Positions 35,529-49,699 are shown, counted from the whole stretch's first letter. The stretch: 63,886 nt of DNA, filler included, from Lenisia limosa (GCA_001655205.1; 10 parts of 10 records of this genome joined end to end with filler, not necessarily neighbours in it); one strand, 5' to 3'. Numbers and translations: made by a program. The notes: a model not told the origin generated them from the sequence alone.

Positions 35529-38015
35529 TTACTGTATACAATAATAAAGTTGCAGAACATGACAAACCCCCACTTGAAGGTAAGGATTCTGGCGGATAAC
35601 ATTGGGATCGGCAAGCAACACTCGAACACGATCGTTTCCAAGCTTCTCTAGAGTGATCCGCACCGCCTGCTCCATTGGAGGCTGTGCAGTCCATAACGGC
35701 TCTACTGGAGCCTCTTGTTGGCCGTGATCCGAGCTGATCAGGTTCATAAGGGCACTGAACATATCGGCTTCCGACCGGATCTGAAGTTTCTGAAGGGGGT
35801 CTGTCAGGTCCGGCACGCGGCCAGGGAGGAAGGGCGAGTTGCTCGAAAGACGAACGTTGGGCGTGAAGATTTGTGACACTTCAGGCTCGGAGTGTGGAAG
35901 AAAGTTCTTGACCGTGTTGGTATCTGTACTAGTAATTGAGCTTGCGCGCGGCCGTCTATATGGCCCAGACGCTACGGAAGAAATCGACGGTGACCTTCCG
36001 CGGCCGTGAGACCTCATCGGCGAACTTTCATGCATTGACCGTACACTGTCGTCATCTGACGTGTCATCGTCGTTGGTCTGCTTCCGAGCCTTCTGGCGAA
36101 CTGCCGGTCCGGGGTCCTGTCGCGTCTTTCGGGATCCCCGTGAGGTGACCGAACACGTGTCATCAGCCTCGCTATCGAAACCGTAGTTCTGCTCATATTC
36201 GGGGACATGGGGGGACACCAACAGGCTGCTAGCCGACGTTGTGTGGTAGTAGGCTAAAAGGTGAGTGCAAGCTTTGTCTGGAGTGTTTATATGCATACAG
36301 TAAAAGAGAAGGTTTCAGCTCAAGAAACAACCCAGTACGCACATTGATTATAATCAGCGGAATGAGGGGAGAAGGTGCTCGGTGAGAGGTCTGCTCGGTG
36401 GCCAAAGTCGTTTGCGGTGGCGGGGCTGGTTGAGAGGACTAGCTCGTTGGTGAACGAGCGCGAACGTGAGCGTGAGCGCGAAGTTCGTTTCGCGCTATGG
36501 GACCGGCGGGTGATGGGGGGTCTGGAGGGTGATGGAATGCAAATGGGAATTTGTGAAATAAAAAACCAATAACAGACCTGAATATTAAAGCGCTTGGATC
36601 TATACTTGATGTATTATTGTCCTCATACCTCATGTCAGCGAAGCCTTCAGGAACAGGTGCCAAGTACGGTGAGTCTTGGGGGGTCTATATGATGGGTTTT
36701 CATTGAGAAAACAAAAGCGATTTTAAAACTATTTGTTCATCAAGAAATGAGTATGACAAACAAAATTAATTGTCTTACCGAATCAAAGATTGGCTGTTGT
36801 GGTGATCTCTGAGGGTGTGCCTGATATATTAGTAACATGTGAGAAAGAATCATTTGTTTGACAAAGTAATGATATATCGAATATTTCTCGGACTATTTAT
36901 TGAAGCGTTTTGAAGACTGAAAAGAGACCCAACCTGTTGTGAGGACTTGAAGTCATGCGGATCGTTTTGCTGATAAGTCAGCGGCGGCGGCCTTCGGACA
37001 AACGTTGTTCCCGAGGTTAGGGAGTCGGGCTTGGCCGTGCCGGGGATGGTGGGGGAGGGGGCTGTGTTGTTATGGAGATGTTTGAGGGGTTTAATATACA
37101 TCATCCCTGTGTTGTGCCAATAATATCTAACGCAACTCATCCCACATTTGGTAACCGTTTCTTCATGGTGTATGGGGGTGAATGTGTCAAGCCAGTCCAC
37201 GTCATAAGCGGGGGTAAACGTGGAGTTTTGCTAAAAGGCAGAGTGAGAGTAGACTATGAGAGAAACGAGAGAAAGAAATAATGTGATAAAGACTGGATTG
37301 AATCAACTATTGTAAAATATTACATTTTCACATGTTAACTACGGAACTTGCAAACCAATCTATCCGCCAAACCTGGGGGAAGCCTTCATTGAGGAACTCA
37401 GATGGTGAGGCGGCGAACAGTTGAGAGTCTTCGGAATAGGGCTGGAACGGCTCCTGCCCCAGGGGGTCTAAGAAGAAACTCTGGAGGGTGAGCTGCTCCA
37501 GAGGGTGGAAGAGATTGGAAGGGAGAGGGAAGGAGAAGACTGGAAGAGAGGGAAGGAATACAGTTATTCCATGAATTTCATCTAAAGGCAGAATAAGAAA
37601 GATTGAATATATTGAAGTCAATGATATATTTTATAATCCCTCTTATGTCTCCTCGAAATGAGATTATGTGTTTCGGCACGAAACGAGCCGGCAAGTTGAG
37701 AATGAATCGAATGAAAAACGTTAAAAAAAAAAAAACTAATCAATAAAGCCCCGGAACATGAAAAGGGTCAAACAACAAAGAAGCATATGGAGAAAAAGGA
37801 AGTCATCGAACATGGTCCACACTCGTGATCAGGAACACTGATTCACATGGAATGTGATCAAACCCAACCACAGAAAGGGGAGGCAATCTCCAGCTCAAAA
37901 TAAACAAATCTGAACATACCTCATCACTGGTCGCTACTGGTGAGGGGTAGGACTCAGAGGAGGGGACTGCGGGCATGGTAGCCTCCTCCTGAGAAGACTG
38001 GGTGTTTTTCTCCAA
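35529..38015 (-). CDS. Ser/Arg/Pro-rich spliced protein of unknown function (fragment)
   Basis: A long open stretch at 35529-36296 (two or more exons) plus upstream exons (RSRSRSRSFTNELV at ~36400-36520; LEQLTLQSFFLDPLGQEPFQ at ~37350-37520; EKNTQSSQEEATMPAVPSS at ~37930-38015). Confidence 0.55.
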
Positions 38016-38439: not shown

Positions 38440-40550
38440 TTTTAGTTTTGCGAGAATGGATGGACAGTATGACCATCGATCTCGACCTGAAGACCACAGT
38501 GATGAGCGTAAGTTCTGGCCTTTCATTGTGTTTCAAGTTTTTCCCAAGTGTTTATGTGTGTGTGTGTATGTGTATGTGTGTGTGTGTGTGTTTATTGTTA
38601 CAGAAATCAAGATGAATTCAAATAAAAAGAAGAATTCATTCTTCGCAGGATACCTTGCCACTGTAAAGGGCTACAGTGAGGGTCTGCTGGAAGTCTTCCT
38701 GGAACAAGATCCTTGCACCCATGGAACTAACTTTGTCGTTTCTGCCCTGTAAGCTGGTGCACATTATTGCAAGGCCATGAGCGCTGGAGGGTGATACGTA
38801 CTGGCTATTCTATTCATTTCGTTCATGCTTTCTTTCGCTTTTCGCTCAAGCTAAGGCTAAGAAAGAGAAGTGTCAATATTTTTCTTTATCGAGAAATCCA
38901 TTCTTTTTCTGTAACGTAGGGAAGCCAGGCATAACCTTGGGTTATTACATCATCCTTCGCATATCTCACCTCCGCCACAGTGTGGACGGCAATAGCTATC
39001 CGCCTTTCGAGACCAAGAGAGGACTCCTTATTTTCCGAGATGTTTGGTGCCGACCCATGACCTCAGGTACGCTTTTCATGACCACAAGTGTATCATCTTC
39101 TTTCATACGTACCATTTCACCCCTCACAGCTTCGTATTTCTGTGCTGTACGTTTGCAAATGAAAAACGGAAGTATTTCGCTTCCGGGCTTCTTCAAGCGA
39201 ATTAACATGGCCCCTGTTAATGTAAGTTTATGGTGAAGGTGTTAAACAGGTAATTTTATTTGCTCCTTTATTGTATCCATTGCAATGCAAAGTAAACTAC
39301 ATGGATTACTTCTACATGGGTTACTTCTTTTTTTGTCGTCTGCATGTTCTCAACATTGACTTGTAATTTTTTCTTTCCATCTCTACACACACTCGTTTGA
39401 CATTGTCCCAGGTGCTACCACCGCACCTCATACCTCACCAAAGACCGGGCTTTTCATACGACTACCTCCCTGGAGGAAGGGTTTGTGATGTTGATGGAAT
39501 GTTTCATTTTGATCTTTGGGAATGTAACTGATATCTTAGGGTCCTCCAAGACCCCAGCCAACACCACCACAAATGTTACCACCAATGATACAAGGCATGC
39601 AACAACACATGCCTCCAGCCCCTTACATGTATCCTTTCGGTTCCCAAGCCAGCCTAAACCCTGTATGAGTTGTGAAACACTGGTTACTCTGTCCCCTTCT
39701 CTGAGATTGTTTACTGAATATAGACGATGCCAATGATCAGTCCCAGTCCTCCACATGAGAGCTGTAAGGGGGTTTCACTTCAGTCCGAAAAATTCGCGTA
39801 ACACATACAATGATTGTCTCCCCAGGTTTAGACCTTAGCGAAACCCAAGATGTTAGTATTGCATTGTTGACCTATTTCTGATCATCATAGGGAGTCAAAA
39901 CCTGCCACCATCCAAGTTGTCCACTGACCCGTTTGAGGGAATAGAAGTACCATTACTAAGGCATCACTTCTCCGAACAAGACTGAATTTCTCATACCATA
40001 TGTATCATATATGCTCAAGGCCCAAAATTATGTCGTTAATTATTTACAGTCGCCAAAAAATCAGCTATTCCTCTTCAAAACAGTAATATATTTCTGAGAT
40101 ATACACACTTTATTTGTTTATGAAGAGAAAAACCCTTTTTTTTTTTTGATCAGCAAACTTTTTCGCGAANNNNNNNNNNTGTGGCCTCGGCCCTCCTCAT
40201 TCATGGCGCAGACGTCAACGCTAAGTCCGCAGTAAGCTCTGCCCGTCATGGTTTCATGGGTTACCGATCAGCTCAAGTCCACCCCACTTCATTCTGCGGC
40301 CCAAAGGGGAACTGTCGAACTCGTGGAACTTTTACTCAGCAGGGGGGCTGACGTGACTGCTCAAAACCAGGTAAGAGGTTATGTTATGAGGTTTTACAGT
40401 GTTTGATCTTGGTCGCTGTGAAGCGAGACACCGTTGCTTTCATTTGGATGTGTGAAGGCTCGCAGACTTATTGAAAAGGACAATGAGACGCCCCTGCAAA
40501 TCGCCAAGTCTGAAATAGCTGAGGTGCTACAGCGCCACATTAGCACGTGA
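38440..40550 (+). CDS. Ankyrin-repeat protein 3' exons (40180-40550); upstream exons of uncertain membership
   Basis: GADVNAKSA, TPLHSAAQRGTVELVELLLSRGADVTAQNQ|DNETPLQIAKSEIAEVLQRHIST*. Upstream open exons at ~38920-39230 are unassigned. Confidence 0.65.
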
Positions 40551-40827
40551 CCAATGACTGCTTCTACCCCAGAATTGCATTTTGTACTTTTCTTTGTTGT
40601 GTGACTATGCATTATATTATTGACTATGCATGATGCATTATATTATTGGATTTCAGATTATATCTTGTATCTTTCAGGAGTGTGACATAGAGAGCGAGTG
40701 TTAATAGGTAAGATTGAAAAGAAGGACAATACATACACATGTGACATAATAAATTAAACCATAGTTACCTATAACCATCTTCGTAAGACATCATCGTCAA
40801 GCTTAAATAACGTCTAGTAGCGTAAGA

Positions 40828-41200
40828 ATATATGCTGCTCACGGTCCAAAATTATGTCGTTATTTCGAATTAATGTCGTTAATTATTTACGGTCGCCAAA
40901 TCAGCTATTCCCCTTCAAAACAGTAATATATTTCTGAGATATACACACTTAATTTGTTTATGAAGGAAAACAAAGGAAAATATAATCTTTCAATTTTTTT
41001 TTGCAAGATAGCACTTTATCGTGTAAATTTAATTTTTTTTAGCGCCACGCTCGCGCAATTTTTTTTCAGTTTTTGCTCGCATTTGTCTCATATGTCCTTT
41101 TTTACGAGTTAAATTGTTGTGAAGTTGACCGTAACATGAAAAAGACACAGTCACAGAAAATTGAATTAACGACATAGTTTAGGACTTCGAGGATATATAG
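40828..41200. mobile_element. Family E: ~370-bp element with imperfect TIRs, plus a truncated copy at ~40013-40135
   Basis: The left end GTCCAAAATTATGTCGTTA matches the reverse complement of TAACGACATAGTTTAGGAC (~41169-41187). About 110 nt (CAAAATTATGTCGTTA...TTGTTTATGAAG) is directly repeated at 40020-40130. Confidence 0.6.
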
Positions 41201-41239
41201 CAATGAGAGTAATACAAATGGGAAATAAAAGGTACTCCC

Positions 41240-43830
41240 CCCCCCCCCACATTGGTATTGGCGGGTGACTGGGCCACGTCCATTGCGGCTTCGTAATTAT
41301 TCAACGAGCCGTCGGTCCAACTTGCCCAGTCCTCAGCGAATATCGAGGCTGGCCCCGATCGGTTGCTGACGTCACCACCGAAGAAGAAAACCTTGTCGCC
41401 AACCTGGGGGGGGGGGTAATTTCCTTTTATGGAAGTTTGTTGTTGAGTGTTTCACTGATATGTAAAGTCGAATATCCAACACTTATCTGTTGACCATTTT
41501 CCCGTCCCCAGTGTCACTCTGCGTACGTTAACATCGGTAGCCGACACATCTACTGTGATGACATTCATACTCACTCGCCCCACAATGGGACATTTGGTAC
41601 CATTCACCAGCACCTAAACAGTCATATTTTGCATCCACCGCTCCTTGGTAATGAGGTGAGGTGAAGTTGTGTTCACTAGGCAAGTGTTTTGTTCATAACA
41701 TTGTTTAAATCCCATATGCTCATTGATGATGTTCCTTGTTTGACAATAGCCCATTTACCCATCCCTTGTTTGAGAGGGCTCTGGGCACTCCATTGTAATA
41801 GCCACATGCGAGCGTGGCTATTACAGTTTCTAGGCTGTCAGCAGAGCAAAAAGGAAGTACATGGCAATGTGAGTTCAATATGCAATCTCATTCATTTTAG
41901 CTTCACCCCCCCTCTCTCACTTCTATCGCAAAAATACACTGATACAAATGTCTACGTACTTTTGGTCGTGGTGTAAGTGGAATCGTAACCGATTGTGGAG
42001 GACGCGGGAACATCGGCAATGTTGATAATCCTGAAAATTGTCACCAAGTACCGAAGGGCTTGTATGAGTCAAATGCACAAAAAAAAATGTTTCATTGATG
42101 TGGGAATAGCATCAGTATTACCAACTTAGTCGAGAACTGGTAAGCAGGAATGACCGAATTGTTTGTCTGATCACCAGTAGTTTCGTGGCCGTATATCGCA
42201 CCACCAACTCGAACCATGTCCATGTGTGACTAATGAGGTTTGGGTGAGGTGAAAGGCAATGCGCATATTATAAACCAAATTTGAATATCTTGGTAATACT
42301 AAGTTCACCAAATTGGCCAATAACATTCCAGAACCCAGACAAACTTCGGGGAGCAACAGTGTCGCTGCTGAATTAGCACAATGTATCAACGTATGAGGCT
42401 TTACCAATCCGCTTGCACGAAAACCTTCAACCTGGGTGTATTACTTAACATGATGGTTAAAAATATGAGGTTACCATTTCGGTCACCCTATTACGATTTT
42501 ATTGAACTTTTTGATCTGCTGCCTGGTAGTTTCCAAATCTGCGCTGTTGGGGAAATGTGTCATTACCCCAACAAGCTTCAAGTTCGGGAGCTCCTGAATC
42601 TGGAGGAAATAAATAATGAAAGTGGGGATTCGAAACTGAATGTAACAGTTCAATTTGAGAGATCGCAGAAGGTGAAATGCGAGTTTACCGTTGATGTCAT
42701 GATACAGTATACTAGTCACAATATGGGGTACCCACAAACAGAGTCGATATCTTTGAAAGAGTTCTCAAAGAAGCACATACGCCCTATATTTATGAGCATA
42801 ACAATATGAATCAAATACATCATATTAATCAGCAATGAATATAAAAACATTTTACTTGTTTCATCAGACTTATTTCCTCAAACCAGATCCAACGTCCACT
42901 TTAACATGCACCTTGATAACTCTGTTGACAATCATTGCCAACTCGTTTAGTATCACCATCATGTCCTTGGAAGTGACCATTTCCTCCACATCAAGGTCAA
43001 TGACCTCTTCGATCTCTTCCGCGCTCGCCGGCCGGCCCCTGTCACTTATGTTACTGATGTTGACCAATTATAATAAATAATGCAATTCTTTACCAAATGA
43101 ATACAATTTCTCCTTTAACATAATGTATGTACATATGATATATCTAGCTATACAAAAGAGTTGAACCGGCCAAACAAACATCTCCAGCACACCTCATAAT
43201 AGTGATGTTCTTATCCTCCTCACGAATGGCCTTGATTTCGTTGTTATCACACACCCCAATGCAGAATACCTTGGCTTCATGGTTGCAGACTAAGTTTGTC
43301 TGGGGGGTGAGTTCAATTTAATTAAACTGGCAAATAATTTTTTTTCAAAACCCACAATACTAATTGAATGTTGAATTTGAAGTATGTTCAATTTAATTAA
43401 ACTGGCTATTTCAATTAGTCAAACACAAATTAAATTACCCTCCCACTCCATTCTCTGGGTAAACTCAAAACATTATCTTCTTTCACGGTTACTTTTGAGA
43501 GCCCTCATAATAGGAACAAGAACTACTACAAAACTGGAGGCCCATTTGAATCCAAGAAAATAGGCCACATCCACAATCACCAATCAGCAGAAGAGCATAC
43601 TCCCACAAACGATCTCTTTAAGATGCCCCATTCCATAGCATTGTCCCTTGAGCATCGTGCATATCTTCACGTTAGGGCCGACTTTGTCTCGGATCACTGA
43701 CAAGTTGTGTCTAGAAGGAGTAAGGATCTTGTTGGAAAGAAGTGGGAACTTCTCTTTTGCCCGTCTACTTTATTGATTTGAGTGAAACAGTTACTTCAGA
43801 AGGAAGCGCAAGGCCAGTGTCCAGTAGCAT
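41240..43830 (-). CDS. alr: Fold-type III PLP amino-acid racemase (alanine racemase superfamily, broad-spectrum BsrV-like), about 12 exons
   Basis: Spliced product: MLLDTGLALPSEVTVSLKSIK|HNLSVIRDKVGPNVKICTMLKGQCYGMG...CIGVCDNNEIKAIRE..IMR|GRPASAEEIEEVIDLDVEEMV..HVKVDVGS|GRMCF..LVGVMTHFPNSAD..HCANSAATLLLPE|SHMDMVRVGGAIYG..PAYQFSTK|IINIADVPASSTIGYDSTYTT..ACGYYNGVPRALSNKGW|VLVNGTKCPIVGRVSMNVITVDVS..|VGDKVFFFGG. The PLP lysine and catalytic tyrosine positions are occupied. The 3' end is approximate. Confidence 0.92.
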
Positions 43831-44228
43831 TGTGAACAATAAAAAACAAAGAAAGGAAGGCTTTTCAAAACTGTTTATCCAATAATTCTTATAGAAATAC
43901 TGCTATTATAACTAATATACTGCGACAATAGCTGTAAAAACAAATTTTACAAAGATACAAATGGGAACCAATCTACATCCCCATGAAAATTCAATATTTA
44001 TTTTGTTTTGGTTTTTTTTTTGCATTTTTGTGTTACTAAAAGAGAATCAGAGAATAAGAGAGAGAAAAGAAGAATAAAACGAGAAGATATACGGTGTTTC
44101 TTCCTTCATTTTTGAAAACAGCCACAACCCCTTTGCACAGGCCGCCTTACGTCCCTTCTTCTCGTGAATAAACTAATTTATGTCCATAATAAATGATTTC
44201 ATAGCATATCACCAAAAATCCGGTGACA
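43831..44228. promoter_or_regulatory. Probable bidirectional promoter between the racemase and YdjC genes
   Basis: ~400-nt AT-rich spacer between divergent ATGs at 43830 (-) and 44229 (+). Inferred from geometry only. Confidence 0.5.
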
Positions 44229-46500
44229 ATGAATGAGTTCACGCTTATTGTTGTGGGTGACGATTTCGGCTTCAACCCAATGAGGGACAAAGGCCTACTC
44301 CTGTCAGTTACAAAGGTTGGGTGGGAAGTATTTATGGTATAGACCCCTTTTAGTCATTTTCTTCGGTGGCCCAATTTCCTCCTTCACTTTCCTGTTTTGG
44401 CAGTGTCTATCTACTCATGCTCATGTCCTGTCCTGCTGTTGGAAAAAGCAACTCAGATTAATGATTTCTTTCTTTGCCCTCTTGTGTGTTGGTGCCCATT
44501 TTGGAGTTGAAGTATTATCAACCTTTTACGCCTCACTCGCCAGGGCATCGTGTCGAGGCTCTCCATTGCCGTTAACGGACCGACAGCCCTGTCTGCTGCG
44601 CACCAGGCTAAAACAGTGGGCTGGTGATGGTTAATGTATCATATTAATTATACAGATACGATGTACCTTGTTGTATTTCTCATCTTTCTAAATGGTATAG
44701 TTACTACATTGTAAAAGGGAGATTATTGTAATAGAGCACGATAAGATAAGCATTCCCTCGCGTTTGTCACATGTAACGAATTAGTTGGGAGTACCGCTGT
44801 CGTTACATTTAAATGTCACCCAGTTCCAGCCCATTTTACCAGGCCATTTGGTGCCGTCCTTAATTGGTGGGCTTTGATCCATGATGCTTGGATTGCCTCC
44901 GTTGGCTATTTATTCCGTAGACTGCCAAGGCAACTTCCATCCAAGGGAGGAATTTATTGCACGCTGGATGTCAGGCATGATTGATAAGCATGAGGTTGGG
45001 TCGCATTCCACGTGTCCTGTGCTAAAAAGCCATTTTGATTTTTTAGCTACGAGACGAGATTTCGGCCCAATGTGAGGCTTTCAAGTCCCTTATTGTTGGT
45101 GCACACTTACGCGCAGACTCGCACAACCACATCCACGTTATTCCAGGTGTGTTTTAACGTTGACATTTGGATGCTGATTTGAATTGTAAATCATGGCAAA
45201 CCGTCAACACCATGGTGTATATTTTATGATATAGTATATGTATGACATGTAATATATCGATTATACCTTCTTACCTTGTCGTATTGTTTTATCTGCTACT
45301 GACTGCTCTCATTCCATTCAGGGATCCCAGATGTGATCGCTCCAGTTCTTGCTCTTTCAGGTTTTGAGGCCATAAGTTAGTGGGGAAAATCAGCCAAAAA
45401 AAAATGTAGAAATGTCCTAATTTTGTCAAATCCTCTGAAGCCCCGTTAGTTACCATTTCAGGAATACCGTCAGAGATGTTCAACACTTCAGGACCTACCC
45501 CTGACTGCTCCCTCCCGTTTGTTGTCCCATCATGTGGGTAGGTTCACTTAATAGACTGGCCTCGTGGAAAACGACTAATGTCAATATTTTCCGTTTATTT
45601 ATATGTTAGAATAGTAGACAAACTATTTGGGTTGAATAGCATCTTACTGTCAGAGTAGTTGATATTTATCCATTTGTTGAAACGATATCATCATCACCCA
45701 GCGGACCAAGACTCAGAAACAAGCAGCGAGACAATTGACCCCCAGGAGTTATCAGATTCTTCAAGAGCGCGATTCAATCAAGCCATTGCAAAGGTTAGGT
45801 TCAGGGCACTTTGTTGCTGACTTTTAATGTGCTATGTCGGAATGGTCCTTTCTTTGAGTATTATCCCAGCATGCTGCATTAAGAAAGCTTCACACCATTT
45901 ACGGTTTAGTACGCAAAAGAAAGCCGAGCTGTTTTCCGGAAATACAATATAGGCTCGACATCCCTCTTTGGCGGAATGAATTTGGTGGGAGGGGGGGGGG
46001 NNNNNNNNNNNNNNNNNNNNNNNNNNNNNNNNNNNNNNNNNNNNNNNNNNNNNNNNNNNNNNNGCTATTTATACTGCTCAATTGAAGAGATGAGGGATAG
46101 ACTTCCTGGCTCCATGCTCCTAGTTTTAGAATAATCAATACTGAACTTACCAGATCCTGCTATTTATTTCTGATTTCTACATCCATCTGTTTGTTTTCGC
46201 CAAAAATGGAGACCATAACCAAGCAGCTTACGGAGCCCTCGCAAAAGGCATTCATTGAGTCTGTCAGTATCCAACTCAAATGTTCTCAAGCTGAGCCGGT
46301 ATGCTGGCCCTCATCATAACCTCAACCTGGCTCATAACGGTAGGGTCCTGTACAAGTCGAGATGATGGTGCATCCTGGCTTCTGCCATGGCTCAGATGAT
46401 TTCTCGGCATGCAGGCGGAGGGAAATGGAACTTCTTGTTTGCTGGCGTGACTTGCAATACTAGTTTTGTAAACGCCGATATGTTATCCATTATTTAGAAA
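44229..46500 (+). CDS. YDJC: YdjC/ChbG-family carbohydrate deacetylase, multi-exon
   Basis: MNEFTLIVVGDDFGFNP, GIVSRLSIAVNGP, LSLHLNVTQFQPIL..VPSLI|DCQGNF, AHLRADSHNHIHVIP and VEMMVHPG match the YdjC motifs ADDFG, GLHLNLT, DxHxHxH and ELMxHPG. The 3' end is approximate. Confidence 0.85.
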
Positions 46501-47308: not shown

Positions 47309-48776
47309 TTAATAGATAATACATTGCAGGATGGCAATAGGTTTATCCTGCGGAAGCCATCCACATTCAGTTTTTAATATTGAATTGAGTAATGAGAATA
47401 GCCCCCACCTTATCAACACAGTTTCTCAGGAATACTGATAGTTTGGCAGCTGCAGGGGTTCCGACTGAGATCGAAGAAAAATCGTGGAGATTCTAAACAA
47501 CAAATTGAGAAGGGGAAAGAATCTGAATTCCTGGTATTAATGCCAAAGTTAAAAAAAGTAGTCAAACTAACCAAATCAACAAAAAGCGAGTTGGGATAGG
47601 AGTTGGTGGTGGAAATGGGCTCGTAATGTTCCACCAAGTCTTTTTTGGAGCCAACGCATAGAATCTACCAAATGAAAAGATCAAGGAGTAGTGGATAGTA
47701 GTAACGTACTCATTACTTGCCATATAATAATCCTTTCAAGTATCTTACCGGGATAGTTTGGAAGAACTCCTCTCTTTCTGAGTCAACCGCTTGGAGAACT
47801 AAACGGTCAAATGGGAACAGTTAATACTTACACTATTTGAAACACTCAAAAACACTCGATATTAATTTGTCTTTTGGATCCAAAACAAAGTTCCCGCCAT
47901 CCTTCATCAGCCCTGCTCCATACCCCTACCATCTCTGCTCCACTGTCCTGGTGACTGCGGTCCTTTGATGACATCGGGCTGGCTCGCGGACCCGACAACT
48001 TCTTCGCGAACCTCACGAATCCACTGCTCCCGTCAATAGGGCCTTAGAACCACAGCAAAGCAAGGAAATCAATTTTTCTACTACCGGATTGGTCCAATAT
48101 GCCTTCAGACAATGGGTGATATCAAAGACGACGTAGTCACACCAACCTTATTTGTATTACGGAAGGACTTGCCATTGGTGAGGTCATGAACAAGAATAAT
48201 GCCTAAGGGGCAACGTGTCAGAATAATGATATTATAAAACAGTCCATTATCATGTCCCATTTCAATAGCAACCCACCATGAAAGTCCTTATAAAAAACGG
48301 GTCGCATGAGTGAGTATTGCGAGGATCCACTGACTTCTAACAAGTCGAAGAAGAGCTCCTCCCCGGTGTTCGGATGTCGAAAAGGCTATGTTTTAGGAAA
48401 GGCTTTCGGAAGTATATGAAGAAAAGTGTATTATACTTTAATTCCATGAACGCTTTTATGACATATCAACCTTCAACCTGCCTCACTTATACAGTTTCTC
48501 TCTGGTATCAAACCACAACATCACATTTGTAAGGAGAATGAAAAGAGAATAGTGTGAAGTAATCATCTTTGTAAGGAGAATGAAAAGAGAATAATGTGAA
48601 ATAATCGAGGGAGATGGAGGCATTCAGGCCCACTTGTAGTCCACCCTTACCATGACTTCGAGGTGGACGCCCACAGTTCCCCCCCATTGTGACGTCTTCG
48701 TGGCATTGCAAAGCATGTTGACAAGACAGGTTTTGCCGACACCACTATCGCCCAACACTAGGATGCGAGGGTTCAT
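47309..48776 (-). CDS. RABL3: Rab-like protein 3 GTPase
   Basis: MNPRILVLGDSGVGKTCLVNMLC..GGTVGVHLEV, FFDLLEVSGS..RPVFYKDFH|GIILVHDLTNGKSF and ILCVGSKKD match RABL3 VLVLGDSGVGKS, WTVG, GIIFVHDLTNKKS and VIGTKLD. Confidence 0.85.
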
Positions 48777-49699
48777 GGCTGAAGGGTCAGGATTAAATAT
48801 GCTGTACTCTTTAGTTTCCAGACAAAAAAAAGGGGGGGACAAGAGGCAACCATTGTTAAGAAGAGAAGGAAGAAGCCCATTGAAGCCACGCACCGAATAG
48901 CCTAGCGAATCGCGTGTCAGAGCCAGCAACGTCGGCGCCAAGTGGACGCAGGCGAAGCCTTTGGGCTGACTTCTTCACCTGCGAATGCCAATTATCAAAA
49001 AATCAAAACTAAATATCAACTGTATTGAGAGAGGCTGGAAAAGAAAAGAATATGACAGCTCCTCAATGATGAAACTAAAGACACAGGAAAACAAAAAAAA
49101 AGAAATGTAACGCACCTTGGCCGAATTTGCAGATACCGAACCTGCCAATGGAAAAAGGGGAGATGGAAAAGGGTCAAGGGTCAAGAAGAAAGATGACTGG
49201 GAAGTATAAACTGTTGTTTGTTTTATTATGGATGGGGGTGGTATTAATAGAGAGAGCAGTGTGTGATCCTGGTGTGATCAATTTAAAGACCTTGAAATAC
49301 GCAAAAAACAAACAACGAGAACGTGAGAGGGGGCGAGGCAGCGGCTCGCTTTCGCATCTTGCAATTCAATTCACGGATTTTCAATGAGCTACTCCACTAC
49401 ATTGCTCCACGCTCTCCACAACACCACATTATTGTTTGGCAGGTTTAAGGGAGTTTTTGTCATACTTTTTGATTCATGCGACAAAGAACATCTCCCAGGT
49501 TATCGTATGTGCGTACCTCCCGGATATCTTGCTATTTGCCGGATGTCTAATCTGAGTATCATCTAAAAAGCTCTTGCGAAATAAAAAAACAAGGTTGTTC
49601 AGGCTGAAGCCGTCCATCACGTCGTGCTATTGGGTTACCCTCCAGGGAAAAAAGAACAACAATAACTATCAGCCAATCTTCAACACAACAACGAAGCTA

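Follow-up and report, generated by a model that had tools for sequence, protein, structure and literature searches.

Canonical alanine racemases (Alr and DadX of E. coli, Bacillus and Listeria; model TIGR00492) are cytosolic and use a dimeric two-base mechanism that depends on a catalytic Lys/Tyr pair. They carry a K-x-D motif with a candidate carbamyl-lysine and a tyrosine at the gate of the active site. The carbamylated lysine and this tyrosine are associated with a narrow site of alanine size, and their loss accompanies the wider channel of BsrV; in Bsr enzymes a chloride site takes the place of the carbamyl-lysine. BsrV (PDB 4BEU/7AGZ), the Aeromonas Bsr (4BF5) and the Proteus mirabilis lysine racemase (4DZA) share the fold and the mechanism but sit in a superclade apart from Alr. 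They have a signal peptide, the sequence A/G-L-N-[DS]-G-G-M with an insertion and without the carbamyl-lysine, and Pro, Ala or Thr instead of the gate tyrosine. Bsr racemases are periplasmic (PMC7890096).

Racemases of this family have also moved into eukaryotes. For Ala_racemase_N, 14 bacteria-to-eukaryote transfers have been described in SAR, holozoa, excavates and fungi, together with S. pombe Alr1 and Adineta vaga, and none of these eukaryotic racemases was called Bsr-related (PMC5169069). Here we examine a racemase gene of Lenisia limosa in a stretch of 63,886 nucleotides (hereafter, the window). Compared by description only, it would represent the same type of event, that is, a nuclear PF01168/PF00842 racemase of bacterial origin. 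Such transfers are already well known; this gene is a new, well-supported case whose donor group is uncharacterised, and it adds to the transfers of D-amino-acid enzymes a well-documented example that keeps an intact active site and has 12 introns whose splicing is proven by RNA.

Gene structure, transcription and residency

The gene lies on the minus strand, where a spliced ORF running from an ATG at 43830-43828 to a TAG at 40771-40769 encodes a 396-aa PLP racemase. Between 40720 and 43912 this strand holds short open stretches, and their translations contain all the motifs that the first-pass annotation had quoted (KICTMLK, IMR|GRPAS, MTHFP, VRVGGAIYG, STIGYDSTYTT, GRVSMN and HVKVDVG), the second of them across the junction of exons 3 and 4. 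Two public runs of one 2016 study contain the stretch, one DNA-like (X1) and the other a polyA 'metatranscriptomic' RNA-seq run (X2). The fraction of sampled words of the stretch that was found was 0.99 in X1 and 0.31 in X2, the latter approximating the exonic share. A 1322-nt contig of X2 splits on the window into 13 pieces, which correspond to 13 exons separated by 12 introns. Ten tabulated joints end in CT..AC on the plus strand, that is, GT..AG on the strand of the gene; the remaining two were deduced from pieces of this contig that adjoin each other, and all 12 introns are GT-AG once ambiguous cut points are resolved. The introns measure 58-437 nt with 24-45% G+C, and the exons have 45% G+C. 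An earlier count of about 11 introns within 41240-43830 was thus right as to their spliceosomal nature but one intron short: coding reaches 40769, and the last exon, behind a 437-nt intron, had been missed.

All exons were defined by the RNA contig and translation, with further evidence as indicated. Exon 1 (43769-43912) holds the 5'UTR, in which in-frame stops precede the ATG in the translation of the spliced contig, and codons 1-21. Exon 2 (43611-43710; Pfam and NCBIfam matches, alignment) encodes HNLSVIRDKVGPNVKICTMLKGQCYGMGHLKEI with the PLP-binding Lys42 (codon 43647-43649). Exon 3 (43193-43299) ends in ...NITIMR, with R90, and exon 4 (42884-43038) encodes GRPAS...KVHVKVDVGS, with R92 and K136-V-D138 (K136 codon 42900-42902); intron ends support both exons, as they do exon 5 (42740-42783; RMCFFENSFKDIDS, with R143) and exon 7 (42345-42431; IHCANSAATLLLPE). 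Between these last two, exon 6 (42495-42599; profile matches) contributes LVGVMTHFPNS with H171 and P173. Exons 8 and 9 were confirmed by alignment: the former (42126-42229) carries MVRVGGAIYG with R227 and the latter (41960-42030) STIGYDSTYTT with the second catalytic base, Tyr270 (codon 41985-41987). Exon 10 (41759-41829; NCBIfam) encodes TVIATLACGYYNGVPRALSNKGW, and exon 11 (41527-41613; profile matches, alignment) encodes CPIVGRVSMNVITVDV with M318 and N319. Exon 12 (41251-41403; alignment) contains lineage-specific insertions and the gate Tyr368 within NNYE (codon 41293-41295). Exon 13 (40720-40813), defined by the RNA joint 40813|41251 and translation, supplies the last 14 codons, TLFKLDDDVLRRWL (coding 40813-40769), the TAG and the first part of the 3'UTR.

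As a rule, the 5' splice sites are weak. Introns 2, 5 and 7, three of the 12 (5' ends at 43610, 42739 and 42344), start with GTTTGT, and intron 12 opens with GT and then a G run. At the 3' side, intron 11 ends in 11 C and then AG, and intron 2 ends in 6 C (the ends of introns 11 and 12 lie near 41404-41415 and 41240-41250). Intron 12 (40814-41250, minus strand; 437 nt) is the longest. An inverted-repeat search and read depth revealed within it a MITE-like element of about 340 nt (40844-41185), with 33-nt inverted ends (40844-40876 and 41153-41185) that are 79% complementary. DNA read depth over this element is in the thousands, compared with about 39 alongside; the element is therefore a high-copy repeat of the genome.

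Read depth over the racemase gene itself (about 39) equals that of its flanks. An 8.6-kb contig of X1 links the gene to upstream sequence, and in an independent ENA assembly (ERZ3820729) NODE_328 (28.8 kb) links exons 5-13 with over 25 kb of sequence downstream, reaching about 21 kb past the left end of the window piece. Bacterial-style ORF packing is absent from the flanks. Contamination or a chimeric origin of the gene is very unlikely because its depth matches that of the flanks, contigs from X1 and from the ENA assembly join it to them, and ORF packing there is not of bacterial type. These results show that the racemase is encoded by a real and expressed eukaryotic gene, nuclear and intron-rich as had been proposed; the polyA spliced contig, the depth and the two assemblies agree on this point.

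We searched the 17-kb neighbourhood of the gene for pathway partners and recognised none; its sole recognisable domain is a small-GTPase P-loop exon, and the extra flank provided by NODE_328 gave no Pfam match. An Rfam search gave no match. The P-loop exon (48627-48941, minus strand) encodes ILVLGDSGVGKTCLVNMLC and has weak Roc/Ras Pfam matches; by its appearance, it resembles part of a gene for a Rab-like GTPase, some 5 kb upstream of the racemase gene. A 255-aa ORF rich in Ser, Asp and Arg (35529-36296, minus strand) belongs to no Pfam family and is a singleton in a collection of 15 billion proteins, where it occurs only on NODE_328 of ERZ3820729. Contigs of the RNA run also map to 40184-40735 and 44784-45151, on either side of the racemase gene, and the loose end of an RNA contig at 40180 suggests a spliced neighbouring transcript.

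Active site and bacterial relatives

Exons 2, 4 and 6 match PF01168 (Ala_racemase_N) and exons 9 and 11 match PF00842 (Ala_racemase_C) in collinear order, with best exon E-values of 6e-7 and 1e-7, respectively; taken alone, exon 6 (29.8 bits) and exon 11 (32 bits) each exceed the Pfam gathering score. NCBIfam alanine racemase models were matched as well. Both the N-terminal barrel and the C-terminal beta domain of the family are thus present in the correct order, and on these matches we assign the protein to the fold-type III PLP alanine racemase family (PF01168 + PF00842). Scores against subfamily models were obtained by scanning the exons separately: they sum to about 117 bits (cut-off 434) for NF009879, the PRK13340 long alanine racemase subfamily, and to about 96 bits (cut-off 168) for TIGR00492.

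In the alignment the catalytic set is complete: K42 (PLP Schiff base), Y46, R143, H171, R227, Y270 (second base) and M318. The residues K42, Y270, R143, H171, R227 and Y46 align with K34, Y255, R129, H159, R209 and Y38 of E. coli. From our own alignment we derived a Bsr fingerprint, defined as the columns at least 85% conserved in the Bsr clade and different in canonical enzymes. Over these 36 columns the residue of the window protein is that of Bsr in 13, that of canonical enzymes in 4 and another in 19. The Bsr-like residues include R90/R92 (BsrV R119/R121), P173 (P206, in THFP), N319 (N348, in SMN) and C38 (C70), together with the GYD..T motif, at an overall identity to the Bsr enzymes of 30-32%. 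Other Bsr positions differ, among them N167 (Asp), P391 (Tyr), E383 (Ala, A358) and N174 (Met). Where BsrV reads A165-L-N167-D-G-G, the window protein reads H-V-K136-V-D138-V-G-S-G-R, which is the canonical carbamyl-lysine motif without the one-residue Bsr insertion; the first-pass annotation had rightly judged this segment Alr-like. Likewise, the gate Y368 in NNYE aligns with Y343 of E. coli, where BsrV has P391, the Aeromonas enzyme Ala and the Proteus enzyme Thr. The protein also starts without a signal peptide or any other extension at its N-terminus, as judged from the stops upstream of the ATG in the mRNA and from the alignment, again in agreement with the earlier reading. Its N-terminus lies about 6 residues ahead of the start of bacterial cytosolic forms, whereas the BsrV, Aeromonas and Proteus enzymes have 20-45 additional hydrophobic N-terminal residues. 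Compared with the canonical enzymes, with which it shares a predicted cytosolic location, K-x-D and the gate tyrosine as well as the catalytic pair, identity is 24-31%, and THFP and MN stand in place of their THFA and MD, while RxR is absent from them.

Relatives were collected indirectly and then ranked locally by phmmer against the spliced 396-aa protein. Searching with degenerate DNA that encodes G[IVM]MTHFPN yielded 98 bacterial loci; plasmid and chromosome records gave the Aeromonas, Proteus and Cupriavidus genes and a range of canonical Alr genes, with E. coli providing Alr and DadX; and about 220 further proteins came from two word searches that started from the best bacterial matches. 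In this set, gathered via bacterial loci, records and word searches, all detectable relatives are bacterial. The best matches were P0147 (228 bits, 39% identity), P0167 from Omnitrophota (220 bits, 36%) and L088 from Acidobacteriota (211 bits, 35.5%), a range of 35-39% identity and 211-228 bits that is the highest of all, and L066 (197 bits, 34%). V. cholerae BsrV (186 bits, 31.5%), the Proteus lysine racemase (185 bits, 30%) and the Aeromonas Bsr (170 bits, 30%) came next, followed by a clostridial Alr (L001; 159 bits, 31%), Bacillus Alr (133 bits, 28%) and E. coli Alr (85 bits, 26%) and DadX (80 bits, 24.5%).

The four best matches, P0136 and others among P0122-P0193 form what we call group C, a large set of uncharacterised cytosolic bacterial racemases of about 370 aa with RxR, K-x-D, THFP, SMN and NYE. 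Where named, the taxa are Omnitrophota, 'Ca. Hinthialibacter', Bryobacteraceae/Acidobacteriota and an unclassified bacterium; the P0147 gene sits on a bacterial contig with tight gene packing. The window protein carries all five motifs, K-x-D being without the insertion in it and in most of group C, and it resembles the group in its scale and in having no signal peptide. The window gene alone has 12 introns, insertions of 5 aa and 2 aa, a new C-terminus, and GYD where group C has GYG. Because most group C proteins (P0147, P0136, P0152, L066) carry the same mosaic of Bsr and Alr residues, we regard the mosaic as inherited and not as a eukaryotic novelty; P0167 is without the lysine. In a Bryobacteraceae-like subgroup Asp replaces the carbamyl-lysine and Thr replaces the gate Tyr. 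Since group C mixes the hallmarks of both sides, it could serve to separate the specificity roles of RxR/THFP/SMN from those of the loss of carbamyl-lysine and gate Tyr.

With P0147 as the query, the nearest solved structures were Bsr enzymes (228-236 bits) and then canonical Alr (219), and no characterised or solved member of group C was among the structures compared. An all-against-all search of representatives with exon 4 gave 0 matches at E<=0.001; because this 51-aa query is so short that only identities above about 55-60% are detected, the result means only that there is no close relative among the representatives. A metagenome scan with the same exon returned only two canonical clostridial-type Alr genes, through the common word IKVHVKVD, and a word search with L088 only its own Bryobacteraceae-like swarm. 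The gene neighbourhoods of L088, L066 and P0147 offered no functional hint.

Phylogenetic position

A tree with Alr, DadX and Bsr had been named beforehand as one check of the assignment. We built four maximum-likelihood trees, leaving out row L116 (a wrong-frame ORF) after the first balanced tree; the three LG+C20 trees agree on the following three points. Canonical Alr/DadX are separated from all THFP-bearing proteins by a 100/99 branch, with the window protein on the Bsr side, so that, as had been claimed, it is not a canonical Alr/DadX. The characterised Bsr enzymes and a clade of marine MAGs form a 100/99 clade from which the window protein is excluded. Finally, the window protein is placed among group C, as one arm of a polytomy with rich sampling; with sparse sampling it was sister to L066 plus the Bryobacteraceae-like group (89/60). 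In AU tests, grouping the window protein with the characterised Bsr clade (BsrV, Aeromonas, Proteus) was rejected (log-likelihood 25.7 lower, p 0.007), while positions as sister to Bsr plus the MAG clade (p 0.20) or to all canonical Alr enzymes (p 0.35) were not rejected. The branch of the window protein is long (1.6-1.7 changes per site), and finer placement is therefore unsafe.

The resemblance to BsrV-type racemases noted in the first-pass annotation thus holds for R90/R92, P173, N319 and the side of the main split, but not for membership of the characterised clade, and it extends to 13 of the 36 Bsr-specific columns. Taking trees and motifs together, group C is best described as the group most closely related to the periplasmic broad-spectrum racemases, which seem to have emerged from inside it or next to it, and the window racemase as related to them and not as one of their members.

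Origin and substrate range

Because a resident, expressed, intron-rich gene is combined with detectable relatives that are all bacterial, an old bacterial origin is the best reading, and the lateral transfer proposed earlier is upheld in this form. Judged from sequence comparison, the product is most likely a cytosolic racemase of alanine (small amino acids). Taken as a whole, the explanation that we consider on balance probable is a single-copy, transcribed nuclear gene, derived from a bacterial group C gene, for a cytosolic PLP racemase with a narrow range of Ala and small residues. Retention of the carbamyl-lysine motif and of the gate tyrosine favours the narrow range. In such a scheme, a eukaryotic nucleus would have acquired a group C gene, and the enzyme, presumably a homodimer, would interconvert L- and D-alanine and perhaps serine or other small residues. 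Lys42 would form the Schiff base and Tyr270' would act as the second base of a two-base mechanism, with Arg143, His171, Arg227 and, at the carbamyl-lysine position, Lys136. Its likely use would be the conversion of D-alanine from the cell walls of ingested bacteria to L-alanine, or the production of free D-alanine.

The alternative that survives best, although we consider it unlikely, is a true BsrV-like broad-spectrum racemase that acts in the cytosol to make or consume non-canonical D-amino acids (D-Met, D-Leu, D-Arg, D-Lys), for the use of prey D-amino acids or for action on bacteria. The position on the Bsr side of the main split and the common R90/R92, P173, N319, C38 and GYD..T are consistent with it. 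In the PDB, the matches of exons 4 and 6 are confined to structures of Bsr and Lys racemases (for exon 4, BsrV and the Proteus Lys racemase), and the N-terminal exons favour NF009879. Against this, the window protein falls outside the characterised Bsr clade in both trees and AU test, its exons, scanned one by one, sum to about 117 bits for NF009879 (cut-off 434), and it lacks the signal peptide of the periplasmic Bsr enzymes; it keeps Tyr368, where the Bsr clade has Pro/Ala/Thr, and K136-x-D138 without the Bsr insertion. A broad specificity is accordingly possible but unsupported, and the multi-substrate activity suggested in the first-pass annotation does not find backing in the predicted active site or in the phylogeny.

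Somewhat less probable again is a racemase for another small amino acid, such as serine, or one taken into a pathway particular to this lineage, for instance for a secondary metabolite or an osmolyte. The long branch, the lineage-specific insertions and new C-terminus in exons 12-13, and N319 in place of the canonical Asp beside the substrate site would fit such a history, but no pathway partners are recognisable in the 17-kb neighbourhood, and the gate Tyr, which serine-active variants usually lack, is kept. We give a still smaller chance to the domestication by a eukaryote of a Bsr-superclade enzyme whose substrate range is wider than that of alanine racemase and which would make or recycle non-canonical D-amino acids in the cytosol; if true, a eukaryote could tap or disturb the chemistry of the bacterial cell wall. 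That the gene is a bacterial contaminant, a chimera of the assembly or a dead relic has a negligible likelihood. In favour of such readings are the bacterial nature of every detectable relative and the metagenomic/metatranscriptomic label of the source study, but twelve spliceosomal-type introns are spliced out in the polyA RNA contig, the intact ORF retains every catalytic residue, the depth equals that of the flanks and two assemblies are concordant.

Returning to the bacterial enzymes, we observed that the Bsr-clade racemase genes L107, L108 and L109, on plasmids of Parasedimentitalea, Novosphingobium and Rhodobacteraceae, lie directly downstream of an amidohydrolase gene; this conserved pair may represent a salvage unit for D-amino acids or peptides.
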